64,000 bases of DNA. Source: Takakia lepidozioides. Lineage: Eukaryota > Plantae > Bryophyta. This document shows positions 1-62,190 of this stretch, piece by piece; within the stretch, counting starts at the first letter, position 1; each line of letters opens with the position of its first letter. Both the position numbers and the translations under genes were made by a program. The stretch is from positions 70,060,001 through 70,124,000 of the forward strand of contig CM060733.1 in the NCBI GenBank assembly GCA_030704615.1. The letters run 5' to 3'. The notes beneath the pieces are model-generated. The model was not told the origin of the DNA and made no database searches. It saw only the letters and a list, made by a program, of their open reading frames with translations.

Positions 1-2484
1 TTCAGAAAGTCATGGATAGAATTCTAGCAGGGGTGGACTTTGCTCGGTGCTACATAGATGACATCATCATCTTTAGTGTTACGATGGAGGAGCATGAGAG
101 ACACCTTCAGGTGGTATTGGAGCGCTTGAGAGCGCACGAATTGAAGTTACATCCGGGGAAGTGCAAGTTTTTCCACAACCAGATTGAGTATCTGGGTCAC
201 ATGATATATCCTGGAGGATTGGGGGTACAACAGACTAAGGTAGAGGCCATTGCACAAATTCCACGCCCCACGGATGTGAGCCGAGTTCGAGCTTTCATGG
301 GGTTGGCAAACTATTATAGACGGTTTGTCAAGGGATTTAGTACCATTACAAAGGCTCTAACCAAGCTGACCAAGGTGGACCAGGAGTGGCAGTGGGAAGA
401 TGAGCAGGAACGAGCTTTTCAAGAGCTCAAGGCGAGGTTGACCTCGGCGCCTATCCTGAGACGACCTATCAGGGGGCGTCCTTTTCAGCTGCATACGGAT
501 TAGAGCATGCTGGGGCTTGGAGCGGTGCTCACACAGGTGGATGATGAGGGAAGAGAGTTCGTAGTGGCTTATGCTAGCCGCTCGAACAACGCTGCAGAGG
601 CTAAGTACAGCTCATATGAGGGAGAGTGCTTAGCTGCAGTGTTGTGTGGCACACTTCAAGTGCTATCTATACGGCAATCTTTTCACCCTTGTCACGGATC
701 ACCAGCCACTCAAGTGGTTGATGGAGTCAGACAAGCTTACGGGGAAGCTTTCACGGTGGGCACTCATACTCCAGGAGTATGACTTTCAGGTTGTGCATCG
801 ACCGGGTTTGGTCAATCGGGATGCGGATGGATTGAGTCGCAATCCATGCATGAGCCAGCAGGATGACACTGGAGCTCGGTGGCATGGTGAGACGGACGAG
901 GAGATGGTGCCGGGATGGCACGCATCTGCATTTTTGTGTATCTTGGCATCGGGAGGTCAGGTTGGACCTACAACAGGGATGACTGTAGACGGAGTGTCTG
1001 AGGACCCTGAGGCTAGTGATGAGCCAGGTGGTGCCAGAGATATACATGAGGATTCGGCTGTGTTGGACTACCTCCGCACTGGAGACACGGCAGCCACTGT
1101 GACTGCCAGGGAGAGGGATCGGATCCTGCAACGAGCCAAGAGGTTCAAGTGGGAGGGGATACACCTACTTCAAGTGTGGGAGGATGGTCGGGTGAGGATT
1201 GTGCCTCACCCCACAGAGCGTGCACGGTTGGTGCGGCATGCCCATGAGGAGTTGGGGCATTTTGGAGTGCGACGCACTCACAGTTTACTGCAAGGGCAAT
1301 ATTGGTGGCGTGGTATGCATACAGAGGTACAACAGTTCGTGGCTAGGTGCATGGTGTGTGACAGGGTGCATGCTTCATTCAACACCCCTACACCACAATT
1401 GCATCATTTACCAATCATGGGATTGGGCTACAGGTGGAGTCTTGACTTCGCAGGACCGTTGCCACTGACTATGCGCCACCACAGATATGTGTTGGTGATG
1501 GTAGAGCACTTCTCCAAGTGGATTGAGTTGGTTCCATTGCCTGACAAGGCTAGTGAGGGGGCTGCGTATGCATTCTTGGATCGTGTGCTTAGCCGATTTG
1601 ATGCTCCAGCTGAGGTACTCACGGACCAAGGGAGAGAGTTCTTGGGGGAGTTTCAGGCTTTGTGTGATAAAGCCTTGATAGACCACCACACCACTTCTCG
1701 GGATCATCCTGAGGCCGATGGCTTAGCAGAGAGAGTTGTTCAGACGGTGAAGAGGGGTTTGCGCAAGTATGGCTTGCATAAGGGACACCTAGGAGATTGG
1801 GATCTTCAGGTTCCTTGGTTAGCCATGGGCTACAGGTTCAGCAAACAAGCATCACTTGCCTCCTTCTCACCATATTTCCTTCTCTTTGGCCGAGAGCCGG
1901 ATTTGCCTGCAGCCATTCGTAGGGACATTGCTCAAGTCCTTAACCTTGACGATCCGGATGTGGGGGTACGTGCATGTGATCAGCGTGCAAAGTTGTTCAA
2001 GAAAGTCATGCCCATGGCTTTTGAGAACCTTGCCATTGCACAGCACCGTGATACGTTGAGGTATGCCACTATACGTGGTGGAGGATATCGTCCTAGGGTT
2101 CGGAGGTTTAGCCCTGGTGACTATGTTTATTTGCAGCAAACTGCTCCTACAACTCTAGATGTTACTGCAGGGCGTGTTATTCTGAGGGTTCGAGAGGTGT
2201 TGCCTTCAGGGGTCCTGATCTTGGAGGGTCGGGATGGCATGACTTGGAAGGACCATGTGCGTAATTGTGTGCCATGTCACCTTCCCAATGTCGATGGCAG
2301 AGTTGACCCAAACTTGGCAGTGGTACCTGCAGGTTTGAGGTGCATGCTCTGTGGGTCTGCCAAAGGGGCAGCCACCATGCTGGTGTATGATCGATGCTCA
2401 AGGGGTTGGCATATGGGATGCTTGACACCACCTCTTGAGAAGGTTCCTGACGGAGATTGGTTGTGTCCACACTGCTTGGGATAG
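1..2484 (+). mobile_element. Ty3/Gypsy LTR retrotransposon pol (RT C-terminal part, RNase H, integrase, C-terminal PHD finger); disrupted, truncated by window start
   Basis: RT motif YIDDII, FMGLANYYRRF, RNase H LHTD*..LGAVL..VAYASR, TDHQPL, integrase HHCC zinc finger (HEELGH..CMVC), DDE core (TDQG..DGLAER), terminal CMLC..DRCSRGWHMGCLTPPL..WLCPHC. Stop at 501-503 and frameshift near 645. Confidence 0.95.
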
Positions 2485-7031: not shown

Positions 7032-8779
7032 GGGAGATGTGTACACAAGACTGCGAGCACGGCGTTCGGGCAAGCGCCCTGGGAGAAGCGGGAATGCAGC
7101 AAGGGAAAGTAATGCAGGGCCGATGTTTCCCAACGACGAAGCCTATTCACGAATCCCACGAGCCCACACTCCCAAAAATCCACTGTCAGAGTTTTCATGA
7201 ACCTTGTCTCCGGAATGCGGCCCCTGGCCTTTGCGCAATAACTGCCAACGGTATGCAGTCAGAAGGCTGTAGACCTGTGCAGGTGCCCTGCGCAAACCAA
7301 TAATTGCGGCGTCTGGGGGGGGCGAGCGTGCAAGCACAGGTCTAGAGGGTCTGATTACAAGCTTGAGTGCTGGACCCGGAGTGGCAAAAGTCAACATTCA
7401 ACAAAATGCATGGTTAACTAGAATTACCTACTTCTAGTTAACTCGGACATTTTGGATATTTATATTTGTATTTTGTGTGTTGGGACTTCATTTGGTCTTA
7501 CATGCCAAGTGAGATTGCACAAAAAGTGGATCTTTTTTGGCGGCGGCATGGGGGTCGCAGATGACCATGGGCTTTTCTTTTTTTCTTTTTGGGTGTATTG
7601 GAATTGCATTTTGGGTTTTTTTTTTTTTTTTTTTTGGGGTGCTTTCATTAACCACCCTTAGTCCTTCAATCCCTGTAGGTTATGGTGCGACATCATCACC
7701 GGGCGAGTATCGACGACTTTGATGCGGTGCCCTTGGATGGCCCCTCGACCTCGTCCGCTCATGACTAGGATACACCTGCTGGGCCTTCACGACCCACACG
7801 GCGGCGTAGACTTGATCCCGGGCACAGTCCACAAGGGCATGGTGTGCCACCTTGCTTGCCACCTTGAGGGCGTAGGCCTCCAAGTCCGGAGCCGCGAAGG
7901 CTCGATGGGCCTACGACGGACCGTCCCCCAAAGATGGAATGTTGGTGCAAGCAGTGTTGGTGACAAATGGGGCCGGGTCTTATACCAATTTTGCGCCGAC
8001 GACATGTTGTCAAAGCACATTACAAGTTAAATGGCATTGCCGATGCAGCGAGGGTGAGTCTTCCATAAACCCTTTTGGATTTAATTAATTGGACACATGC
8101 AATTAATTAATGAATACATGCAATATACATTGCGGTAGTTTCATGGTAGAAATGATTGCTAACTAGTGTTGCAACATATATTGTATATTGCAGCCACGGC
8201 TTGATGTCCAGGCAGCCCGCAATCATATTGCATTGGAGGCATTTGAGAGCAGACTCCTTTCGACATTCGATGTCCATCCAGTGCCGGATGTGACCAGCTT
8301 CTTTCCCCAGGATGGATAGGATCCGTGAGACGATGGGTTATAAGTATTGCTATAGTCTGTATGGTAGGCGAGCAGGCCATTCCTCACCACCGGCATCTCC
8401 GCATCCACCATCACCCCCATCTCTTGCACAATCCTTGCACACACCCAATCCACACCCATCCCCGCCTCTTTCTCCACCTCTAGTTATACCTCCGGCCCCC
8501 TTGGTTGTACCTTGGAGTGCGGTATGGCCACAAGTTGTTCGACCACAACGACTATATGCACCTCACACTCCTAGGAGATGCAAGAGGGCATTCCCCACTC
8601 CTCTTCGACGGACCTTGGACCACAATATTAAGTACACAGCCGCATGTAGGAAATTGCTTACAAGGCCCTTCCAAAGCATGTGGTGGCAGCCTCTTGTGCC
8701 TGCAGTCCCAATTCCTGATATCGAGCCATTTGAGTTCTGGGGTCGACGATATTGCGTGAGACTTGCGACCGACCCTACC

Positions 8780-9177
8780 ATGGGTCGTGGACTATCACAA
8801 TGGATGACATTGTGGTGCCCGACCGACGTTTGGTGGATTTGTTTCCTTAAATTGGTCCTTACTACATCGCTACGGAGTGGGCCACATTGCGCCGCTGCGC
8901 TTCTTTCATTGGCCCCTATATTCTGGGTGTCAATGACATTGAGGTGGTGCATATAGGGATTGGCCAATGAGCCGCCTAATTTATTGTGATGGCAACCCCG
9001 ATATTTTTGGCAATGTTGCGGGACTCATCAATAGCTCCATTTCAGATAGGAGCCTCACCAATGTAGAGTGGGAGGAGCGACATGATGGGAAGGCTCCATC
9101 CAGAGATAGGCACATTTAACATGACATGTACATGTAGGACAATCCCAGCCGGATTTGAGTTGTTTGTTGTATACTAG
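8780..9177 (+). pseudogene. Degenerate SET-domain (lysine methyltransferase-like) coding relic
   Basis: Manual translation across frameshifts: MGRGL (8780), DGNPDIFGNVAGLINSS (8987-9038) and RTIPAGFELFVVY* (9136-9177). These match SET motifs GxGL, GNxARFINHS and RDIxxGEELxxDY in the right order and spacing. Confidence 0.65.
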
Positions 9178-9369
9178 TTATTTCATGCCTCGGGGTAGGC
9201 AATACGGATGTGTGATCATACTTGTACATTGACCACATATTTTTTCCATGTATAAAAATGAGCATGTATACATTCGGTTCCAATTCGGGTCTACGGACCC
9301 TATTGTTATTCATACGTCATTCGATAATGTTACTTTTGCAAATTGTCATGCTTAATTTGGAGCGACGCT

Positions 9370-25285: not shown

Positions 25286-26506
25286 GCTCCATAAAACCAC
25301 GTTTCCATCCAACATGGATGGAAATTTGGCGCCGTATTTCCATCCACGGGGTTGGATGAAACCATATTGGGACCAATCAGTGAACTTGGAATGGTGGATG
25401 GGGTGAGGAGGTATAGCAATGATTTTCCATATTCCATATTGATAGGGACCTCCCAATGAACTTGGAATGGTGGGTAGGGTAAAAAATACCACCTTGCTGC
25501 AGGATGAGCAATGATTTTACAAATTCCATTTTGAAACCCCGAGGTTTAAATTCATTGTCATGGTCCTGGATACAACGGATGTCGATATCAGAGGCCAACA
25601 TCTTTACGTGCACATCCTAGACACTGAATGTCAAATAGTGATGGTATGTTGCAGGGCCCCGTATCACTTTGCTGTCAGGCTTTGGCAACTCAGAAGGGCC
25701 TATGGCTCTTGTTGATTTCCATGGCAGCATTATAATTGCCTATTGCCGGGGTGGGGGTGGGGGCAGCGGGTGGGTAGAAGGTAGGGCGGTGGTTTGGATA
25801 TGAAGAGGGTTTATATATTTTTGATGGAACAATACAATATTATTGTTAACTATATTGTTGTGGGTGTGGGGATGGAGGATGCAGCTTCACAAACACACTA
25901 GCAGAACTTCCGTTGTTTGGGTGGCATCAGAAAGCAGATATACTAGGGGCCATTCTTTACTGTGTTTTACTTGTCCGTACCCTCATATTTATTATAATGT
26001 CCATAGTGCACATGTCTGACCACACATTCAATGGAAAGTTTTGCACTTGCATGCTTAGATCCACTCTGCATATAAGCATGTCCTTGTAATACTTGTGATG
26101 TTGTATTTGATTGGTGATGTGAGGTCATGTGAGGTCATGTAATGTTGCATTTGATTGGTGGTTGGCAGGGCTTTCTTAAGTTCAGCATACTTCAGGAGTG
26201 GATTGTTTATCAGTCATTCAGAATTGTGGCCTATGGTATGTGATATTGCAGAATTTTGAACAGATGAAATTGATGGGCAGGGTTGCATACGTCAGTGACA
26301 TCACGTCACGTCGGACCTGACGCTGACGCGACCAACGTCACGTCAGTTTTGTCGAAAAATCAGTAAAACATGAGTTAGGTGAAAATATGCCACGTAGGTG
26401 GACACGTTGTATTCCAAGCGACACCTTGGCAAGTGAATGAATTGTTTTATAACTTACTCCATCCGCCAATATTTGAGATAATTTTTAAATCATTATTGTT
26501 AAATTG

Positions 26507-26690
26507 GTGCGACCTCCAAATGGTGGTGGTCGCAGAATTTATCTTATTTTCTAATAGTTGTGACCACCAGCAGAGGGGTTGTCGCAGCATTTTTCTTTTT
26601 TCTAATAGGTGCGACCATCAGTAGGGGGGTGGTCGCAACAATTTTCTTTTTTTAATAGGTGCGACCACCAGCAAGGGGGTGGTCGCAACA
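26507..26690. repeat. Left array of TGCGACCACC-N-GGTGGTCGCA palindromes (continues at 31204-31340 after the CACTA insertion)
   Basis: Four ~50-bp units with T-rich spacers. Confidence 0.9.
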
Positions 26691-26707
26691 ATTTTTTTTT
26701 TTTAATA

Positions 26708-31198: not shown

Positions 31199-31705
31199 AT
31201 AGGTGCGACCACCAGCAGGGGGGTGGTCGCAACAATTTTCTGTTTTTTAATATCTGCGACCACCAGCATGAGGGTGGTCGCAGCAGTTTTTTTTTTAAAA
31301 TAACATGCGACTTCCTCATTCGACCTGAAGCGGTCGCAGCATTGGATTATGGTTCGTCGAGCGTGTGAGGCTTGGAGGCTGGAGGGTATATAAGGTGGTC
31401 ATAATGCTCCTCACTTCTTTTGTGGCAAACACTTTTGTGATGAGTGAATGTTCTCTATTCTTTGAGCAAGAGTGTAAGCCCAAGAGGAGGGTGCGGACCG
31501 TTTGCTGTTGTGGCTTCCACCAGAGCCACTACAACAAATTGTCGAAAAGCACAATATTACATGGTGCATTGATCCACTTGGATTGATGCCGTAGTGTTGG
31601 GCCATCGCATTCTGTTCTAACTTCTATTGCTCTTGACAAATTTACCAAGTACACTAGTGTTCTTCGTTCAACCTTAAGTCTGTGGTTAGGGTTTTGGGTG
31701 TGAGG

Positions 31706-34660
31706 ATGAGGGAGGAGTGGATCCCTTGGTTCACCGTAGACCCGCACAAAAAGGACGGTGTTCAATGCAATCTCTGTGCATTGAAGCTGGCGGGTCGCAA
31801 AGATCGCATGTTATATCACCTCGGCTACAAAGATGGGAAGAATGCAGGGGTTAGTTTGTGCCCAAAAGCCTCAATGCAAGTGAAAGCCCACTTTGCCCAA
31901 TGTGGAGGCAATATCCCACCGTCTCTTGATGTGGCCGCAGCTTCTGAGCCAAACACTCCATGTTCGAATCAAAATGTCCCTTAGAGTTGTACCCAGGGGG
32001 ATTCTTGCGAGGCGTCTGCTGTTTGTGGAGAAGCCGGTGGGTCAGGAGCAACACCCGATTGTACGCCAACACTTGTACGGACCAGACCATTGAGGCAACA
32101 ATCAATGCAAGAAGGCTTAAATTTGTTGCACAGGAGGACTCTAGATAAGAAGTGGGCCCAATTTTTCTACGAGGCCAATATTCCGTTCAATGTCTCGAGG
32201 CTTCCTGCGTTTGTGGCTGCTGTCAAAGCCACGTCCGATTCCAAGTCCACATACACACCTCCGAGTTATCGCGATCTTCGCACATGATTGCTAGAAGAGA
32301 CTATGTCTGACCTCACCCAAAAGGTGAATGAAAAGACAGGTGATTCTCTCCGGAAATATGGAAGCACTATATGTGCGGACGGTTGGAGTTCTGTTACTAA
32401 TCGACCACTGTTCGATGTCATGCTGGTCTGTCCTGCGGGGGAACAATTTTTGGGATCCGTTGACACAAGCGAGGAGAGAAAAGATGCATGTTATCAAGCA
32501 GGGTTGTTGACGAGTTTCATCGATAAAATTGGAGCTGATAAAATTGTCCAAGTGTGCACGGACAATGCATCTAACATGGTTAATATGGCCAATATTTTGA
32601 TGGTACGATATCCCCATCTATATTACCAAGGGTGTGCTGTTCATATCTTTGATCTCATTTTGGAGGATTGGGGAAAAAAATCATGGATGAAACAACTAGT
32701 AAAAAGGACAAAGTCGGTTGTGATGTTCATTCGTACACATCACATCCCTCTGGCATTGTTTAGAAAGCATGAACCCAAATACAGCCTTAGGAACCCGGGT
32801 GAAACCCACTTTGCCACAAACTTTTTGATGGTGGATTGATTAGTGACTGTGAGGGCGGGTCTGGAGCAGGTGATCATTGACCCTCAATGAGATGCGTATG
32901 TGGGCACCTTACGCGACTCTCGTAAGTCCAAGTCTTTGAGCAAAAGTCGGAGGGTCCGTGCAATCATTCGTTCCGATGGTTTCTGGACGAAATGTGCAAA
33001 TTTTGTGTACATGGTGGAACCGGTGTTGATTGCTTTGCGGGAGTTTGATGGAAAACAACCAATAATGGATAAAACATGGTTGATATTGGAAAACCTTGAG
33101 AAGCACGTGCAATCCTTGAGGCGTCATCCATTTTCTATGGACGATGATTTGGCGGCAAGGACCGAGGATGCATTTTACGATCGCAAACGGATGGTTCGCA
33201 CGGACTTGCATTATGCCGGGGCCTTGTTGAATCCATTCTTGCTAGACAATACGGATTTGAGAGACGACGTGGATGCCAAAGCCGGGCTTGTACGGGTCAT
33301 CATGCAACTCGTGCCCTTGAACATGACAGAGCGAGTTTTGTCCGAGTACCAGTGCTTCTCGGATCGCCAGAATCCTTTCCATGACATGCCGGATCCAAAA
33401 GCAATGAACATGTTGCCACATGAATGGTGGGATCTGATTGGAGCTGGAGCAAAGACGTTAGCTCCCATTGCAAAGCGTATTCTTGCTCAAGTGTGCTCTA
33501 CCTCGTCCTGTGAGCGAAACTAGAGCAGTTACTCGTTTGTTCACAACAAGATTCGCAACAGGTTGAATCCTGCCAGGGCTGACAAATTGGTTTATGTCTA
33601 CACGAATTGTAGGCTACTACGAGAGAGGACAGCAATTGACGCATCTGCATGGTACGAGAAGAATCTGTTGTCTGAAAAATCTGCCTCAGAGGTCCAATCA
33701 AGCAGCAATGATGACACCGACGCCGTGAGGAACTCCGACTCCGACAGTTGGGATGGGTCCGATGATGTGGGCAATCCTCCACATGACCCATATGAATTTA
33801 ATGACAATGATGCTGCAATGCATCCATCCTTCGATGACCTTGTTATTGATGAACTGTGACATGGTGTCATCCCAATTGCGGACCCCCTTCCCCCAGTGGA
33901 GCACACTCTCAACAATGAAGTTGAGGTCAACTCTCCCTTACCACGAGTTCCACGGACTGCGGGAGATGTGCAAGTCGAATCGTCGGATGATGACAACCGG
34001 CCGTTGTCATTCCTTCACCGACATCGTGCCCCTGTGAACCGTGCTTCATCTCACGCCGCTCCATCTCATGTTTCTCTTTCTCAAGCCGGTCCATCCTATG
34101 CTGGTCCATCTAGTCTCTCTCCCCCTCATGTAATTCCTTCCATCGCTACTCCGATCCTGGGAGATGCTTCTTCTACTGTGGGACTTTTGCAAGTCGAACC
34201 ATCGGATGACGACGACCAGCCATTGTCGTTTCATCTGGCCCAACGACGTCCGCATGTGAACCGTGCTCCCTCGACCCTCGCTGGTCCATCTCATGCCCCT
34301 TCCTCTCATGTCGGCCTCTCTGATGTATGTGCGAGTAGCCTTCCTCATATGAGACCTGCTCCAAGGCCACCACGAAATCCGGGACAAGCCCAGAAACAGC
34401 AGAGAATTGTGCAACTTTTTGTTGGTGACCGACCTGTGAACAGGCCTGATACCCTAGATGGTATTCATGATAGAAGTGGAAATCGACCAAAGAGACAACT
34501 GAACGTACTCCGAGGACGGCCAGTTGCCTCTGGAAACGAAAGAATAGATGGAGATCATGATTCTAGCACTGATCATGGGAACGGGGGTGAAGTGAGTGGG
34601 GACGAAGATTTTGTACTAGGCGTGAGATCATACCATCGTCGTCGTGCTAGACAGAACTAG
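31706..34660 (+). pseudogene. hAT transposase (BED finger, DUF659-type core, dimerisation domain, low-complexity tail), interrupted only by in-frame stops
   Basis: W..F..VQCNLC..RMLYHL..C; FFYEANIPFN; ICADGWS; QVCTDNASN; CAVHIFDL; THFATNF; WWDLIG..AKRILAQVCSTSSCERN. ORF pieces 31682, 32090, 32288, 32900, 33563 and 33896 are all in one frame. Confidence 0.93.
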
Positions 34661-34954: not shown

Positions 34955-35505
34955 GGGGACCAACCTCCTGGTGGTCGCACCTATATTAAAAAAAAAAATT
35001 GTGCGACCACCAGTAACGGTCGTCGCAACTGTTAAAATTAAAAAAAAATGTTGCGACCACCCCCCTGCTGGTAGTCGCACCTATTTACTGATTTAATAGG
35101 TAGTAAGTTAGTACGTAGTAAGAGGGGGGGGTTCCCTTATATAGCCTCTCAGGGCGGTGGGACCCTTCTAGAAGCCCACCGACCCTGGGAGCCTTCTAGA
35201 AGGCCCTGGACACATGTCAACCCTACATGACTCCCTATTCTAAATTTAGCCAATTCCTCCATTCTTTTTTTGGACCCCCTCATCTCATTCCTCAATACAC
35301 GTGGCCTTCCTACATAGGCGCCCCACTCTAATTCCTGGGCCACAGTAATTCCTGGACCACTCTAGAATCAGGGCCCGAATGAAACTACTCTACATATTAT
35401 TTGTACCTATTTAACAAAAAGAAAAATGGTCCGACCACCCCCCTGCTGGTGGTCGCAGCTATTTAAAAATAGTGCATTCCGCGACCACCCCCTTGCTGGT
35501 GGGAC
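34955..35505. repeat. Internal TGCGACCACC palindrome copies flanking a ~300-bp TATA-containing segment
   Basis: Copies at ~34958, 35002, 35053, 35430, 35481; CCCTTATATAG at ~35134. Confidence 0.75.
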
Positions 35506-37609: not shown

Positions 37610-40096
37610 TTATTACTTCGTTGTCGTCATCTCCAGATGTTGATGAAGATGCTCCGGGTTTAGAGGATGTGCCTCCACCAGTACGGAGAGCTCGAGTGGT
37701 CAAAGATGGACCCAGTGTTGTGTGGTCCACCCTTGTCATCATGCGTAGCGTTCTAGGCGAGTGCTAACTCTCTTCCACATTTGCCAGAGCTGGATTTATC
37801 GCTCTTGCTACGGCTTCATGCAATTTTTCAATTAAATCCGATATGTTTGGAAGTGGCAAGAACACCCCTGGAATAGGGGCAACTTGGTCACGCCATGTGT
37901 TCTGCCAAAACTTTACAACACTCGTGATGGCAGCCTTGAAATTGTCCAACACCTCCTCCTGCTGGGGGTCTTTGCGCAACTCTAGAAATGGCCCTTCATC
38001 CCGACGAGGCACCCAGTACCTCTCATTCATATCATCCCAACGGATGCTAGCGGCCTCCAACTCCCTCAGAAATAGGTCTCTCCCAATCAGTTCGCGATTG
38101 TTTGGGTCGTTTTCCGCTGGCACCCACGGATCCTCAGGCAGTCAGAAGAATCTTTGTCTGGTACAGCTCCAATGCCCTCCCAAGTTCCGGCAAAAAAAAC
38201 TTCCTTTGGACTGGGTCCCGTATGCCTCTAGCACGCACGGTTATTTCCCAGTTGGATGTCACCCAAAAAGTCACCGGATCTTTAACCCTAGTTAACGTCT
38301 TAGCATCCAAGGCGTGCATCTCTCTTGGAGCATCCCATGTCATTGTCTCCCCCCAGTGCTGACAATTTAAAAAATCGTAAGGCGATACATCCAACGGCAT
38401 GTTGTACCGGTTGTACTCGTATCCCGTGGGCATATTGTCTTGCAACCCAAACAACTCGTAGAAACGTCGATAGATTGGTCCACGGCAGTCAGGGCATTGG
38501 CTGGCTTGCATGGCTGCCGATATGAGACATACGGGGTGGACCAAATGGCCACATGAACCAAACATATAGCATCCCTCCGGTCCGTAAGGGTTTAGGCACA
38601 TTGTGCACACCGTACCATCTGTTACCCATGACGCTGGATTGCTCCATGGTATCCACGTCCGTTCATCCTCATGAATGTCGGATGACATCCTCGGCCTGCT
38701 CTCCCACTCCTCCTCTACTTCCAAATCCCAGTTTATGCTCTTATTGGTATCGGAAATTGTATGCACTCAGTGCTCAAACATGACATCCACATCACCCCAT
38801 GTGGTGAATCCAGTGTATTTCGACGTGAATACATCACGCACAGTGTCGTGCCTTTGCAAATTAACAGAGATGTTATCTACACTTTGATTCGACAAAGGGT
38901 GTTGCACGTTGGAGGGAGGACAACGCTTCTTCTATCCGTATTTCCTGCCATGCCCATGTCACCCAATTCCGCCAATTCCCCTTCAACCATGGCCACGATC
39001 GGATTTGCATGACATTTGAGTACCGATATGCAACAGCCCCAGCTTGCTCGCGTTCCCCCACAAACTGCTCTAATTCTTGTTCCTGGGCCGATGTAATTTG
39101 CACGGCTGAACATTCCTCAGTTTCCACTATGGGGTCCTTCCTTTTTCTTGCCCTCTCCGCCGCAAGTCTTTCTTCCTCAACCCTCGCTGGGTCCAGTTCA
39201 GGCGTTTGCACTTCATTCCCATGCCCGATTGAGTCAACCCCGTCTATGACGCAGTCAATGTCCATTGGTGGCATATCCAAATGCGCCAATATGTCTTGCT
39301 CGTTGGTGATTGGCCTCGGGTCCTGAAGCACACCGCGTACGCTGTCGAGAGTCCCCAACCCCATTGTTTCCAGCAACTTCGCTATTTGCCAGCGTTGCAA
39401 ATGAACAATGTCTTGCAGGTCCTTGATGTGCTGTTCATGTGCAGCCAACTGTTCCTCCAACGGAAAGCGTACCTCGCCCCCCACCTCAAACATTGAAGGC
39501 CCGGTTGCGGAGACCTGTTGCGGCGTAAAATCTGGAGGTTGGTCTGTCTTTCCTTCTTCTTCCACCTCGTCGTTTCCATCCAATCGTATGATGTCTTGCC
39601 CCTGACGTATATACAAGTCTGGGATATCAGAGAACATGTATAGTCTAGTACGTTGTCTTGCAGTGGCAGTTTGCCAATCCACTGGTCGCAATAAAATCAA
39701 CTTTATGTACAACATGGCTGCAAATAAATACATGACCTTGTTGTTGACGAGCGGTTGACCCCACAATGTTGTATATACCTCCTCTGCCCTGTGGCGGAAA
39801 TGCGGATTAGCGCAGGAATGCAAGCTAGCTTGATTTTGTTTGGTTTGTGGATCATGCCTATCTCTGGGTCACAAACGATTTATGTGACACCAGTCCACAA
39901 ATTTCCTGCAATCACCAAGCGACCACCGCTGCCCCAACCTCCAAACTTCCCAACCTGGTTCTGCAAGAATGTTGGGGTCATTGTATATGTCCCAACAAAG
40001 TTCGCGCCTGGCCCCTTTCGGTTTTTTTTTGGGAGGTCCAGGTTCATTATCGTCATCCCTGGGATGACCTCCTCTGTCTTCCTCCTCCGCCATTTA
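37610..40096 (-). pseudogene. RING-finger (RING-H2-like) protein cargo gene with NLS and coiled coil, frameshifted
   Basis: Start MAEEED..PPKKKPK; pieces 39823-38873, 38766-38134, 38123-37764; RING CTMC-x13-CGH-x2-H-x2-C-x10-CPDC at ~38490-38610. Confidence 0.75.
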
Positions 40097-40519
40097 TGGC
40101 TCTGGCTTACCCCTACTCGACAGGTGATTGCTAAGAAAAATGTTCTCCCAACCCTCCTAAATCGTACCTAATCCTACTCCCTAAAGAATCCTCCCCAAGT
40201 ACTAGAGGCACGTGTCACTCCCTCCGCAGTTCTAAGTGATATGACGCAATGTGCAATGAAAAAAACGTGGGTGCCAGAGGAGGGCTTCCCGGGAGGTACT
40301 CAGCATCGATTTCGTAGGAACCAACGGCCCAAAATACCCCCCACCCGACCAATAGCACCCCTCTCCACTTGGACTCAATGACAAGGAATGCAACATCCCA
40401 TCGCCCACCAAGTCCTGGTGTGGAGAAAAGTGAGGGAGAGAATGGCCTCGAAGGCCTTATAAGCCCCCCCTCCACACTCGGGGCGCGCGCTGTCATCATG
40501 ACTGCGCACGCTAATAATA

Positions 40520-41090
40520 GCTGCGACCGCCAGCAGGGGGTGGTCGCATCATTTTTTCTTTTCTTTATTATGTGCGACCACCAGCAGGGGGGTGTCGCAG
40601 AAATTTTGTTTAAAACAAATAGGTGCGACCACCACCTGCTGGTGGTCGCACTATTTTCCTTTTCTTTAATAGATGCGACCACCAGCAGGGGGGTGGTCGC
40701 ATAATTTTCCGATTTTTTAATATCTACCAATAGTCAGTAGCTCAGTTGGTTAAGTGCACTGAGTGCGACCCGGACGATTCTGGGGTCAAATCTTGCTACT
40801 TGATGGGTGTGGTATGGTTCGTGGGTGGTGCCCCATTCCTACGCCTCATGGCACATAAATGAAAGAGGTTATTTTCTCATCTCACTACTGAGGGGCCTGA
40901 TTTGTGTGCTGTCGCTCCCAGGTGTTTCCCAAATATATATATATATAAATCTGCGACCACCAGCAGGGGGGTGGTCGCACCATTTATTTTAAGGTGCGAC
41001 CACCAGCAGGGGGATCCTCGCAGGGGGGTGGTCACATAATTTTCTTTTTTTTTAATATCTGCGACCACCAGTAGGGGGGTGGTCGCACCA
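40520..41090. repeat. TGCGACCACC palindrome arrays upstream of the RING gene
   Basis: Four copies at 40522-40701 and three to four at 40952-41087; TTATAA at 40457-40462. Confidence 0.9.
40732..40800 (+). other. tRNA-like (Pol III A/B box) relic within the palindrome array
   Basis: TAGCTCAGTTGGTTAAGTGC ... GGGGTCAAATC. Confidence 0.5.
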
Positions 41091-50659: not shown

Positions 50660-51090
50660 GGTCGCACCTATGGGTGGTCGCAGCTAATAACAAAACAAAA
50701 AAAATGTTGTGACCCCCCCTGCTGGTGGTCGCACCTTTTTAAAAACAAAACGAAAATGTGCGACCCCCCATAAGCGGTCGCACCTAATAACAAAAAAGAA
50801 AAAGTTTGCGACCACCACAGGCTGGTGGTCGCACCTATTTTAAAAAAATGAAAATGTTGCGACCACCACCTGCTGGTGGTCGAACCCAATTTAAAAAAAA
50901 AGAAAAAATGTGCAACCACCCTCTGCTTGTGGTCGCACCTATTAAAAAAATGAAAATGCTGCGACCACCACCTGCTGGTGGTCGCACCCATTTAAAAAAT
51001 AAGAAAAAATGTGTGACCACCCCCTTCTGGTGGTCGCACCTATTTTTTTAAAAAGAAAATTGTCCGACCAACCTTTGCTGACGGTCGCAT
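50660..51090. repeat. Right array of TGCGACCACC palindromes (about 8 units), upstream of the kinase gene
   Basis: ~50-bp units with A-rich spacers, mirror image of the left array; TATATAA on minus strand at 50581-50575. Confidence 0.9.
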
Positions 51091-51935: not shown

Positions 51936-53425
51936 GTGTATCTCTTTCCTTATTTTGTCCTGGGAGCATAAGTGTAAACTAGATATGTTAATTTCAGCTC
52001 ATGCTTTGTTATAGGTCAGTCATTCTCTTTGCCAACATCGAGATGTGATAAGTGGTCCCTACAATCAAGAATGGCTTTGGTGTTGATTGTGTGTTGATTT
52101 AGTCATACAAATCCATCTACCAATCTATCCTGAATGAATCATTTAGTTGGAGGACTCGTAGATAATCAAGATGATTTCTATGGTGTGATGACATCACAAG
52201 AACCATGGGGGGGGGGGGGGGCTGTGCAGCAGCAGACCATTCAAAGGCTGCTACCCGCAACCATAAGCTGCTGCTATGAGTGTGAAGCATTCAAGTTGTC
52301 CGTCTGCCAAGGCTGCAGTGAGTAGCTTGCGAAGACCTTTTCACATATTTCCCACCAGGTGCTGGGACAGGTGCTACAGCAAACAACGTTGTATATGTTG
52401 CTGGCCCTGATATCAGAACATGGTGCCATCAATCTTAGTAATGCGAAAGCTGAATATAAGAGCTCATCTGGGGAGGACCTCATCTGGTACTTCGGGACGG
52501 ATGACATTTGTACATAATGTAGAAAAGAATGTAGAAATGACATGGTTCTGTTTGCACATTTGAAGTGAAGTTTGGGACCTTGAACCGAGAAAGAGGGAAT
52601 GGTCAAAATCAATTCTGACCTGCATTGCTCAAGTTTGCAGTTGGGATATCGGATGGGAAGTGGAACTTTTGCAGGTCAAAATTGCTGAAGCCACACCTTG
52701 AGCAATGCCATTTGAGGCTGTGGTTGACAAAGATCTGCCTTTGATGGACACCTGTTCTGTATGATAGCAAGTGCACTCATCCCTGTAAAATGTACCACCA
52801 TTGGTATCTCCATGGAAAGGAGAGATCAGCTGAGCTCAGGTGCTGGATAACAACTTGTTTCCCCACTTGGCTGGTCCTTCATGAACTTATGTTAAAATTA
52901 ACGGGGAATGGATTGGGAAAACTTCTTATGCTGGTTTTTTCTGATTCATGCAAACCAAAAATTATATGGCATTACCTCACCTGGTGAGCTAACCCCTGAT
53001 ACAAGAAAAAGGAGACAAACAAGGTGCCAAAGTCCTGAACCCCTCACACCAAAGTAGCCAAAGCTAGAACCAAAATCACTTGGCTCCTTAACAAAGTGTT
53101 GTAGATGCATATGGCCTTATCTCTGAATTGAAGCTAAATCAAATAAATCAGTATTTGAATCAGATAACAAAGCCACACTTTATGAAGTGTTGCCGCACGT
53201 CATATACCAAATCCAGACGTGCGATCAGCATCTGAACTTCAGGCAATTCCTAATACCCTCACAACTTTTGTAAAATTGGAGCACTCCATTAGTCAGACAA
53301 TACCAAGGAATTAACAAACGGGATATTGGCTTTTGTAAAATTGGAGCACTCCATTAGTCAGACAATACCAAGGAATTAATAAACATGATACTGGCTTTTT
53401 ACCTTCAGGCACTTAGCTACTGAGA

Positions 53426-56400
53426 ATGGCATTGTCGGAGATCACAAATTTGTCGTTGAGCAAGCAGCCTCCTTATAACGCGCGGGTTGCAATTGATGGA
53501 AAGTATGCACCGTTGATTTTGAGAGGTCGATTACTAGAGGAGCAGACACCGAAGTCAAACTTCCCTAAAAAATGGAGAGCGGGAGGTATGAACATAGATC
53601 TCTGGCTTGATTCATCCCTTTATCCCATTGACCCAGCTACAGAAGTACGTCCCAACATGAGTTCCATAAGAGACTTGCTTCAATTCGTGGGAGATGGAGA
53701 GGAGGGTTTTCTGGGTTATGTGAAACACATTCAAAGTGTTTGCTCAACCTCTGTAGAGACCGCAAATTGGCAAATTCTATTCGAAGCTGCACAACAGCAA
53801 AGCGCAGTAGAGATTCAAAAATTGAGGGATCAAGTTCAAGTAGAAAGTTCCTCCTGCATGGAGAGTGATTCATTGAGTGCTCAGATCACTACTCTCGAAA
53901 GCAACATGAGCAACATGAGAGCTTCATATGAGAGTCAGCTGTCTGCGGTTACAAGTTCAAAATAAAGAAGAAGAAGTTCGTGTAATGGAGGGTGTTTGTG
54001 AAGCTCAATTGGAAGTTGTACGATCAATTCATGCGATGGAGTTAGATCAGATTGAGAGTTCCCACAAGTCCGAATTGAGATCCCTCAGGTTGCAGCTCAC
54101 AAGGTCTAGGGCAACTTATACTTGCTTGGAACAAAAACTGAGTAAGGTTCACAACACTCCCTATGGACCGAGAAGCCAAATACGCCAGAGGAAAGATCTG
54201 AACAATCTTGCACCAAACGGTGGACAAGCCAAGGCGCTTAGAAGATTCGCGCGGAGTATCATTATGCCAGCGATTGCACAAAAAGTGCAACAAGAGAACG
54301 TTGCATCAAACAACAAGAAGAGGCTTTATGGCAATAGAAGTACCTAAGAAGAATCTGGAAAAGTCTTTGCTCAAATTCTATCAAGGACTGAGCTAGATTC
54401 GATGTTGCATGTGCCTACTTTTACTCACGTAGGTGCAAAAATGGCAAATCAATATCTTAATGAAATCGGCAAACAGGTTGGGCCCAGTGAATGCCAGGAA
54501 TGGGATCACCCAAGCAGGTTACAGTGCAATTTACAAGAAGTTTAAAGGTGATGTAAAAGTTGCCTCCAAAGGGATGAGAGTAGGATGTCTGCCCAATCCG
54601 CATCGAGTGTCGAAATTGCGCAAGGAATTGAACTCCAAGCTTCAGGATTTCGTAGGTGAATACTACCACTTGAACAACAGCCTTGAAGTTCCTAAAAAGG
54701 TCAAGCACGGTGAAAAGAATGAGGCTACTTGAGTGACACTATCCGAGCACAATTCTTTTTTCGCGGATGTGGAGTAGGTGCAGCGTAGCATGGTCGAACT
54801 GTATGAGATCACACTTGCCGGTAAGTTTTCTACATCGTGCACCTACAAATTTTGTGTTTTTAATCTTTAATTTCATATATTCTTAGTATTGATCGCTTCA
54901 TTTTGATTTTATAGAATTGAAGGGGAGCCCTCTACAGTTTGTCTTGAAGCTTGATGAGGCAGAGATCATTCATGCCCAAAAGCTAGAAAGAGTGAGTATT
55001 ACCCTCATGAACCGTGCATTAGACCCATCCATCACTCCTGATAGTGAAAAGTTTTTCAGTGTGCAAAGTGAGAGAGAGATTTGGCCTATAGCTTGTTTTC
55101 AAGTGGCAAAGGAGAACACAGAGGTTCTGAACTGGGTGTTCCAACAAACCAAACTCCCTTCGCTAATTCAAGCCCAAGAAGATGGGCAACTTCTTCACGT
55201 CCCAGGTTTTGGTGATTACAAGATAGAGTGGCACATGGCAGCCGACATGAAGACAATAAAAGCCATGTTCGGTTTGAAGGGAGGTGCAAATAGTTTGCAT
55301 TCTTGCATTTATTGCATGCGGGAGAGAGTTAAGTCTGTAGAGGGGTCCATGAAGGACGCCGCTGCTGCTATTAGTAAGCGTTCCCATACATGGAATGGAG
55401 GCTTATTTGCCCAAAACATTACTGCCAAACCTGTGAGTGGGAGTCAGGGAAAAGATCGTTGGAAACCAGTGTTGCCCATCCCCATTGAAAGAGTGCATAT
55501 TTTCACTTTACACGCCATGAATAGGATCATTGAGAAAATGGTCCACCTCTATTTCATGTTCGTCTGGACCATTCGCGATAAGAAATTACAAGAGTTAGCT
55601 ATTGCTGACATGGAAAAAGTGTTGTCCAGCACTGGTGCATACGGTGGTATGGTTAAGATAATGAAAGATGATCAATTGTCTGGCAAATTGAGTAATATCC
55701 CCAACAAACCTTCGTTCAGTGGCCCACATGCTGCCAAACTCTTTAAACCGAGTACTTTAGAGGGAGGCTCCGACAAGTTGTACATTGATGTGGTAAAGTC
55801 CGAGCACAACCACACTGAAGATGGGGCATGTAGGAGAAATCGATTAGCATGTTGGGTTGCATTTGATAAATTGTGACCCTATCTTTCTGGCCTTACACTC
55901 ACCGGTGGACAAAAAGCTGAATATAAGAAATGCGTGGAGGAATTTGGATGCGCTTTCATCAAGAGTTGGGGGGAGGGTCCAGTTACACACTATATTGTGA
56001 GTATCTAAAACATCCCTTGATATTGATTGGAATGCTTATAGTAAAATTTTGCATTTCAATTATAGCACTTATAGATGACAATGCTAATTGTTCAAATTGA
56101 TTGGAATGCTTGTAGTAAAATAGCATAGATGACAATGCTAATTGTTTAAGTTGATAATTTGCAGCACGTATTGGTCAAGCACACCCCGTGGTTTGTTGAA
56201 AGGTATGGAAGCTTATCTGTCTGGTCATGTCAAGGAATGGAAAACTCGCATCACGCGGCAAAAGCGGCATATCAGCGTCATACTCAACATGCTGGAACAA
56301 AATGCAAGAAAAGTCCTTTGGTACAAACCTATGAACATTGGTTGAGGATCATTCAACATAGATTCAGAAACAAAAGCCTTCAATCGAATGTTGCCATTGG

Positions 56401-56596
56401 TAGCCTTAGAGGTGAGGAGGCAATTCAGGCCCGACGTACAGCATCCTTAAACTCAAGCGCAGCAGCGTACAGCGCTTTGTGGCGATTAAGATGCACTAGG
56501 GTTGGCAGTAGATGGGTACCAAACTCTGAAGAGCCGATTGTAGAAGAGCCGATTGAAGAGTCACCGGAGGAGCCAATTGCGGACTCCCGGGTATGA
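53426..56596 (+). mobile_element. RAG1/Transib-like DDE transposase pseudogene with two introns (54821-54914, 55997-56164)
   Basis: VLKLDEAE, SVQSE..WPI..KEN, AADMKTIK..GL..SCIYC, TLHA..R, spliced VTHYI|HVLVKH..RYGSLSVWSCQGMENSHH. Both introns are GT-AG and phase-compatible. Stops and frameshifts in the N-terminal coiled-coil half, and TGA at 55874. Confidence 0.8.
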
Positions 56597-57329: not shown

Positions 57330-57625
57330 GCCGAAAGCTACATCTGGAGGCAAATCGAGTTGCCGTTGCATGTAAGCATGTTGAACATAGATTTGGATAC
57401 CACTGTGGATCCACCTTCGAAATGAAACTTCAACACCTTCGCCTTATACGCCCCCTCTGTTGTAGAAGTTCCGCCGTGCTTCGATGAATTTTTAGAATGA
57501 TCGCCTCTTTTATCCGGCATCAATGCTACCCAAGAGTTACTCTCCACCTTCATGGGAATCCAATGATCATCCTCGTCTTTTGAATTGAACAATATCACAG
57601 ATCCTACTTCACTTCGTGGCCGCAT
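57330..57625 (-). pseudogene. Small coding relic convergent with the RAG1-like gene, function unknown
   Basis: SNSWVALMPD..AYKAKVLKFHFEGGSTVVSK, continuing by frameshift as YVQHAYMQRQLDL; protein-like composition. Confidence 0.4.
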
Positions 57626-61419: not shown

Positions 61420-62190
61420 CCCCCGGATGGAAATCCGGCGCCGAATTTCCATCCAGGGGGTGTGGATGAAGTCGTGTCGGGGGAGGGAGGGCCATGTGGC
61501 ACACCAAGTTCATCCCAGGATGGAAATACGGCGCCGAATTTCCATCCATTTGGGAGGAGATCCAATCACGTTCAACCCATTTTCGTCCTGCCGGATGGAA
61601 ATACGGCGTTGAATTTCCATCAGGTGGAAGTTGGATGAAGTCGTTTCGGGGGGAGAGCCGTCCAGCTGGAACCCAAGTTCATCCCACCGGATGAAAATAC
61701 AACGCCGAATTTCCATCCAGGGGGATTTAGATGAAGTCATCTAGGGGAGAGAGGCTCCTAGTGACTCCCAAATTTCATCCCCCGGATGGAAATATGGCGC
61801 CGAATTTCCATCCAGGGGGGTTTGGATAAAGTCTTCTCGAGGGAAGGGAGCGACAAGTGGCACACCAAGTTCATCCCCTGGATGGAAATACGGTGCCGAA
61901 TTTCTATCCAAGGGGGGTTTGGATATAGTCCTCTTGGGGGAAGGGAGTGACAGGTGGCACACCAAGTTCATCCCCCGGATAGAAATACGGCGCCGAATTT
62001 CCATCCAAGGGTGGTTTTATGAAGTTGTCTCGGGGGGACGGTGCGACAGGTGGCACACCAAGTTCATTCCCTAGATGGAAAAACGGCGCTGAATTTCCAT
62101 TGCAGGGGAATTGGATGAAGTCGTCTCGGGGGGAGGGAGCGACAGGGGGCACACCAAGTTCATCCCCTGGATGGAAATACGTTTTCCAGG
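61420..62190. repeat. ~95-96-bp tandem array, about 9 palindromic cores GGATGGAAATACGGCGCCGAATTTCCATCC
   Basis: Cores at ~61425, 61518, 61593, 61689, 61784, 61880, 61977, 62073, 62169. Confidence 0.95.

Follow-up and report, generated by a model that had tools for sequence, protein, structure and literature searches.

The 64,000-nucleotide stretch of the moss Takakia lepidozioides analyzed here (contig CM060733.1, positions 70,060,001 to 70,124,000; below, the window) contains a spliced, decayed transposase gene on its plus strand, at positions 53426-56596, whose open reading frame (ORF) pieces are scattered over different frames. On the evidence presented below, this is probably a nonfunctional gene from a cut-and-paste DNA transposon of the CMCT clade, most likely of the Lanisha lineage and not of Transib proper. 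Comparison with the intact, intronless relatives P0169 (813 residues), P0191 (898 residues), and P0193 (900 residues) and with a related locus, L003, led to the following layout, in which D1 and D2 denote the first and second catalytic Asp residues and a slash denotes a splice junction.

53426-54339, plus strand: exon 1, placed by tblastn with P0169, P0191, and L003 pieces and by translations.
54340-54432, plus strand: probable intron 1 (GT..AG, phase 1), placed by colinearity with intronless P0191 and P0169 and by splice-site letters.
54433-54820, plus strand: exon 2, which precedes the core, with GITQAGYSAIYKK...LPNPHRVSKLRKELN...GEYYH.
54821-54914, plus strand: intron 2 (G/GTAAGT...TATAG/, phase 1), placed by colinearity across the junction with intronless P0169.
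54915-55996, plus strand: exon 3, the catalytic core, with D1, QSE, D2, CxxC, and VHIFTLH, ending in ...PVTHYI.
55997-56164, plus strand: intron 3 (GT..AG, 168 nucleotides), with the spliced joint present in RNA-like contigs.
56165-56596, plus strand: exon 4, with HVLVKH (H-x4-H), GSLSVWSCQGME (containing the catalytic Glu), a conserved C-terminal tail, and the stop codon at 56594-96.
57345-57622, minus strand: fragment of a partner gene, tail-to-tail with the transposase gene, found by tblastn with L002:18921-20132 from a related element.

The exon pieces were searched separately, and the intact natural relative P0169 was folded in place of the window protein. In tblastn comparisons with P0169, P0191, P0193, and the L003 pieces, the gene was colinear with its relatives from the start (MALSEITN, versus MALRDISN) to the stop codon at 56594-96, and intronless P0169 spanned it colinearly with an E value of 2e-78. 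Exon 1 opens with the conserved start MALSEITN; its other recognizable parts are a coiled coil, a GPRSQIRQRK motif, and, toward the N terminus, the motif DLWxDxSxYPxDP...GxxGFLGY. Exon 2 corresponds to the part of P0169 whose predicted model resembles residues 462-510 of RAG1, the enzyme by which vertebrates rearrange their antibody genes. Two RNA-like runs, X6 and X7, yielded contigs with the joint 55996->56165, which removes intron 3, and DNA run X1 did not; both RNA-like runs are from the same organism, their RNA label is a guess, and the contigs stem from a close paralog. Moreover, many relatives' called proteins end in THY[IM]-VS, and since such ends represent read-through into the intron, the site of intron 3 is conserved across the family. 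The sequence-only reading of this locus, made before any search, had counted two GT-AG introns. The intron at 55997-56164 is supported by observation and the one at 54821-54914, whose junction is covered by zero RNA-like contigs, by colinearity. The gene probably has three introns, as 54340-54432 is likely a third; relative L003 has a gap of ~490 bp at this place. Just upstream of the start codon, two tandem copies of a 65-bp unit occupy 53265-53399, and the copy number varies: one metagenome contig "goes back 65" there.

The motifs that the sequence-only reading had likened to the RAG1 core (D, S..E strand, D, CxxC, LH, H-x4-H, and E) are all present, in that order and in one colinear reading. 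The D1 codon (54953-54955) lies within LKLDEAE, and the D2 codon (55244-55246) lies in AADMK, followed by FGL; between the two is the QSE motif, on the SVQSEREIWPIACFQVAKE strand. Downstream follow CIYC, the CxxC motif (55304-55315), the His codon of TLH (55511-55513), THYI/HVLVKH, which is interrupted by intron 3, and the Glu codon (56240-56242), within QGME. The Asp-Asp-Glu (DDE) triad and the C2H2 zinc ligands are thus in the right order and at the right spacing relative to RAG1. This set of motifs is far beyond chance, because a 319-residue piece of exon 3 (54917-55873) has 312 relatives among 1.8 billion representative proteins (best E value, 4e-91) and because of the colinear tblastn cover mentioned above. 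Most of the 312 relatives are fragments ending in ...THY[IM]-VS; the few intact ones span 800-900 residues. Family-wide, the residues D, QSE, D, H-C-H, and E show no variation, the first Cys of CxxC shows very little, and the Glu is also invariant among all 33 relatives of exon 4. The window follows the same order as P0169 (D379, D476, C496-x2-C499, H559, H729-x4-H734, and E753). An outlier, P0124 (635 residues, from a Joint Genome Institute metagenome), keeps D, D, and E and has G and D in place of the two Cys residues of CxxC and Y and V in place of the two His residues of H-x4-H, a joint loss that would be expected if these four residues formed one zinc site. Pfam searches with all window pieces returned nothing relevant, an Rfam search of the window gave no match, and neither did a word-index search limited to the C-terminal region of P0169.

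That this copy is dead, as had been proposed, is clear from three in-frame stops (at 54730 and 54775 in exon 2 and TGA at 55874-76 in exon 3) and two frameshifts, one at ~53940 in exon 1, after which most paralog DNA contigs carry 5 extra bases, and one near 54500 in exon 2. In addition, VHIFTLH has a Phe where the family-invariant Cys stands in VHxCTLH. The window copy is therefore incapable of making the enzyme.

The core of P0169 (residues 335-813), folded on a checked alignment, yielded a model with a predicted local distance difference test score (pLDDT) of 82.7 and a predicted template modeling (TM) score of 0.83. In this model, D1 is located on the first long strand and D2 ends the fourth strand and is followed by a helix, an arrangement typical of RNase-H-like transposases. 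A Foldseek search of the PDB returned only RAG1, amphioxus RAG-like protein (BbRAGL), or HzTransib among the top 47 rows (E values down to 6e-8), and VIA gave a Z score of 18.1 for RAG1 531-1008 (394 residues aligned; root-mean-square deviation [rmsd], 4.7), followed by BbRAGL (16.3) and HzTransib (16.1) and then by the P element (9.9), ISCth4 (7.7), and Hermes (6.5). With RAG1 and HzTransib at the top of both lists, the RAG1/Transib core fold suggested earlier is supported for this intact relative, whose core is predicted to comprise RAG1-like pre-RNase H, RNase H, ZnC2, ZnH2, and C-terminal domains. The stretch preceding the core (P0169 165-345; pLDDT, 85) gave weak Foldseek rows. In VIA, residues 90-146 of this second model were placed on RAG1 462-510 with an rmsd of 1.3-1.6 and Z scores of 6.1-6.7; the first five rows were all RAG1, the next row had a Z score of 3.9, and for one RAG1 chain the fit was colinear from RAG1 residue 391. 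The pre-core part may therefore resemble the dimerization and DNA-binding domain of RAG1, which, with Z scores below 8, is suggestive only. For the N-terminal domain and coiled coil of the intact relatives, no known counterpart was found.

Sequence similarity to RAG1 is a different matter. A phmmer search of the PDB with exon 4 gave ten matches, all to RAG1 937-997 and all with an identical H-x4-H-x19-E spacing, with E values of ~0.6; these were not recovered with family profiles against the PDB, which returned coiled-coil noise only, and the Pfam RAG1 domain models had no match in 72 family members at E values up to 10. Significant sequence similarity to the RAG1 core or Transib was thus not found in these searches (best phmmer E value, 0.6; no match for profiles or Pfam RAG1_* models). 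A fold search of the ESM Atlas was headed by unannotated clusters from Rotifera and Mucoromycota (TM, 0.72-0.73), with Transposase_21 (EnSpm) clusters, one of them from Streptophyta, at 0.65-0.66 and RAG1 clusters at 0.62-0.65. To our knowledge, RAG1 and Transib have the only solved structures of the CMCT clade; they will therefore top any PDB search, and such a search cannot separate the branches of the clade.

A related element could be read to its ends. Four loci in one ENA assembly carry a transposase that is 47-49% identical to that of the window and has the same exon layout, and the four copies share exactly the same left end, from which point on their mutual identity is 96-98%. Three of these (L003:7406-L005:17682, L002:7430-L006:16891, and L004:7404-L007:17110) were read to both ends; they are ~97% identical, and the two that were measured are 18.4 and 19.4 kb long. 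The terminus sequences (CATTAGAAAAC...GTTTTCTAATG) are of the CATTAG type, with 20-bp terminal inverted repeats (5'-CATTAGAAAACTTT...AAAGTTTTCTAATG-3') and thus CA..TG termini, and the transposase gene begins 640 bp in from the left terminus. Internal arrays (e.g., 10 copies of a 20-bp unit and 5.6 copies of a 268-bp unit) are present, as are several further ORFs, which had no Pfam match. No target-site duplication of 2 to 10 bp was found at the flanks of the three full copies. The 5-bp duplication of Transib, one of the features that the sequence-only reading had named, is therefore absent from all three, and CATTAG stands in place of the likewise named recombination signal sequence-like CAC ends (5'-CAC(A/T)(A/G)TG). 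Given these ends and the lack of a duplication, the related element shows neither the hallmarks of Transib nor the CACTA ends and 3-bp duplication of CACTA elements.

The window shares with this element only the transposase gene and the partner-gene fragment at 57345-57622, which is homologous to the N terminus (~100 residues) of a 404-residue ORF in the related element (tblastn; 39% identity over 69 residues and 62% over 16 residues; E value, 1e-10). A second gene thus accompanies the transposase in two species; the 404-residue ORF itself had no match in Pfam, the PDB, or the Atlas. That the family is multicopy follows from the DNA run, in which 223 contig pieces with 85-100% likeness fall on 3.5 kb of the window. 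The RNA-like contigs represent a paralog: no piece matches the window perfectly, and for most the identity is 90-97%; this paralog is spliced at intron 3 and has AGC where the window has the TGA at 55874-76. In both RNA-like runs, its contigs also lack 55204-55284, i.e., 81 bases or 27 codons, including that of the second catalytic Asp. The skipped bases have AG..GG ends, which is not a canonical intron, and neither the skip nor the AGC was seen in the DNA run.

The CMCT clade was defined by Kojima in 2025 on the basis of three catalytic residues, two Cys residues, and three His residues in this order, namely, D, D, and E, plus a C(2)C motif, an H(3-4)H motif, and one more His, which stands after the second D and ahead of E, and its members are EnSpm/CACTA, Mirage, Chapaev, Transib, Plavaka, ESTA, Lanisha, and RAG1 (PMC12730594). 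Both P0169 and the window show this set of residues in this order. Since the motif set is common to the whole clade, including EnSpm/CACTA and Lanisha, the DDE and C2H2 signature alone does not show a RAG lineage, and since EnSpm-type Atlas clusters match as well as RAG1 clusters, the view that this is a RAG/Transib lineage apart from the catalogued plant superfamilies is not supported. In the same publication, HHpred gave RAG1 for a fungal EnSpm-like lineage, CMCT elements were reported to have 5'-CA..TG-3' termini and 2-5 bp duplications, and Lanisha was described as "showing similarity to EnSpm," with C(2)C and H(3-4)H motifs (PMC12730594). Lanisha was named as a superfamily in 2020-21 from the moss Ceratodon purpureus (GenBank accession number MT647524), on the V chromosome of which it is enriched (PMC8245031); the naming is also found in Repbase Reports 2020 (via PMC12730594). 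In the published tree, the Repbase families Lanisha-cDNA-1_DrEr, Lanisha-1_RhIr, and Lanisha-2_StPi are placed outside a Transib clade with 100% support.

The footprint of the family studied here takes in a protein of the fern Adiantum, one cluster from Streptophyta, and a 242-member cluster from Mucoromycota that ranks among the best fold matches, in addition to the present land-plant genome. We take the Repbase codes to stand for a fern (DrEr), Rhizophagus, a Mucoromycota fungus (RhIr), and a coral (StPi), each of these readings being probable and our own. The footprint is consistent with, and not proof of, the Lanisha host range. Two elements of the sequence-only reading are retained here: the host is indeed a plant, the genome being of the land-plant type, and "little-described" is a fair term, as the likely family, Lanisha, received only brief mentions in the literature searched. 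The family is, then, probably of an already known kind, with the window copy as a new member that is real but dead. In a living element of this family, a dimer of the enzyme would bind the terminal inverted repeats, with their CA...TG termini, and would cut by means of a two-metal DDE RNase-H active site, presumably braced by the C2H2 zinc site, and could in this way move elements of up to 18-19 kb with several further genes.

Several points weigh against this overall reading. The assignment to Lanisha is inferred from host range, the published motif description, and exclusion. The catalytic Glu falls in a low-confidence stretch of the P0169 model, and no terminal repeats or ends were found for the window copy by inverted-repeat and self-BLAST searches. 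All three full copies of the related element, admittedly a small sample, lack a duplication, whereas CMCT elements are said to make one of 2-5 bp. A language-model search placed RAG1 clusters beside the family's own cluster (0.95), and we know of no resemblance to the RAG1 DNA-binding domain in EnSpm.

Some of these points would favor placing this plant family within the Transib/RAG1-like superfamily, as a true member, or next to it, as its sister, which would make the plant copies directly relevant to how RAG arose: besides the score of 0.95 for RAG1 clusters in the feature search, RAG1 heads both the Foldseek and VIA lists, the pre-core part fits RAG1 462-510 (in one chain colinearly from 391), and the ten PDB matches of exon 4 are all to RAG1, with identical H-x4-H-x19-E spacing. 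However, the latter matches are not significant (E value, ~0.6) and vanish with family profiles, the Pfam RAG1 models match 0 of 72 members, EnSpm-type clusters fit the model equally well, and the related element has neither a 5-bp duplication nor CACAATG-type ends. Lanisha, moreover, lies outside the well-supported Transib clade of the published tree, and the 39 "Transib-like" proteins reported in 2022 from angiosperm assemblies (PMC9435367) are canonical Transibs on small scaffolds and constitute a different sequence set from the window family. We therefore consider membership in the Transib/RAG1-like superfamily quite unlikely. Placement as a highly divergent offshoot of the ordinary EnSpm/CACTA elements of plants (CMC proper) would agree with the TM values of 0.65-0.66 for Transposase_21 clusters, including the one from Streptophyta, and with the published description of Lanisha as similar to EnSpm; yet neither the window pieces nor any of the 72 family members matched Transposase_21 (PF02992), even at an E value of 10, and the related element has CATTAG ends, not CACTA, and no 3-bp duplication, which makes this placement distinctly improbable in our estimation.

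The expressed paralog raises the question of whether the locus, instead of being a transposon copy, descends by duplication and decay from a host gene that had been domesticated from such a transposase. The paralog contigs, spliced, lacking 27 codons around the second Asp, and with AGC for the TGA, would suit such an origin. Against this stand the many divergent DNA variants that fall on the stretch, the partner-gene fragment of a related mobile element adjoining the gene, and the demonstrable mobility of the relatives, with four copies sharing an exact end; the window copy, too, keeps D, D, and E yet is full of stops and frameshifts. A tamed origin of this locus thus seems highly improbable. 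A broader idea, which we put forward as speculation and regard as unlikely, is that the family might represent a separate, deep-branching green-plant sister group of Transib/RAG that has kept more of the RAG1 core than its catalytic domains, including a RAG1-like dimerization and DNA-binding module and a Gly-x-Arg-x-Arg stretch in the place of the nonamer-binding GGRPR of RAG1. It would drive giant, duplication-less cargo elements and might already have been domesticated once, as a catalytically disabled host gene. If true, it would offer a second natural experiment on the domestication of a RAG-type transposase.

Several other features of the window were recorded. To the left of the transposase gene, palindrome arrays of TGCGACCACC-N6-GGTGGTCGCA, in 51-bp units, were found, together with remains of other mobile elements, and a further repeat lies to the right of the gene.

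646-2484, plus strand: ORF for a Ty3-type RNase H and integrase, with a PHD finger at its end; mobile-element remains.
26502-26707, 31204-31311, 34969-35457, 40515-41087, and 50673-51089: palindrome arrays.
32900-33523, plus strand: ORF with a hAT dimerization domain; mobile-element remains.
38134-38766, minus strand: ORF with a RING finger; mobile-element remains.
61591-62181: 6.2 tandem copies of a 96-bp repeat that has a palindrome of its own (GGATGGAAAT...ATTTCCATCC), located 5 kb downstream from the transposase gene.

The ORFs downstream of the gene, at 58-63 kb, had no Pfam match. The 8-mer TGGTGGTC/GACCACCA occurs 26 times in the window, with ~2 occurrences expected. On an unrelated contig, next to P0169, palindrome arrays of another kind (L008 9392-9815 and 10593-11271) have this 8-mer as their half-site, with 19 occurrences and 0.4 expected; it is absent from the third related element. 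Directly downstream of a palindrome array on L008, and 1.5 kb from the intronless transposase gene, a 322-residue ORF with a core-histone fold was found (8276-9247, minus strand; Pfam Histone; E value, 1e-26).

For the locus itself, these findings mean little, as it holds one dead copy. The sparsely described Lanisha-type family, on the other hand, gains a predicted RAG1-like core, a conserved intron, ends in one relative, and an apparent lack of target-site duplication, and the expressed paralog without the second catalytic Asp is relevant to a possible plant counterpart of RAG domestication. A more general caution is that RAG1 tops structure searches for any CMCT-clade transposase.

Compared with known systems, the family shares with RAG1, RAGL, and Transib (4WWX, 6B40, and 6PQX) the core fold over ~390 residues (Z scores of 16-18), the order D, D, CxxC, His, H-x4-H, and E with an identical H-x4-H-x19-E spacing, and a pre-core region resembling RAG1 462-510. 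The distance from D2 to CxxC is 20 residues in the window family and 19 in RAG1. It differs from RAG1 in having a long N-terminal domain and coiled coil where RAG1 has its N-terminal zinc and RING region, and from RAG1 systems in that no RAG2-like partner was seen with it; it further differs from RAG1 and Transib in having no significant sequence similarity or Pfam RAG1 match, in the CATTAG ends of the related element, without a 5-bp duplication, and in its spliceosomal introns and its elements of up to 18-19 kb. With EnSpm/CACTA and Chapaev (CMC), it has in common the clade-wide motif set, equal predicted folds (TM, 0.65-0.66), the 5'-CA...TG-3' termini of the related element, and large elements with several genes and internal repeat arrays. 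It is set apart from EnSpm/CACTA by the lack of a Transposase_21 match and by related-element ends other than CACTA, and from both EnSpm/CACTA and Chapaev in that no 2-4 bp duplication was seen in the related element. As for Lanisha, the likenesses are a moss host and a multicopy state, the published EnSpm-like character with C(2)C and H(3-4)H motifs, and a footprint of Repbase codes that, if our species readings are right, overlaps the fern, Streptophyta, and Mucoromycota hits of the window family.

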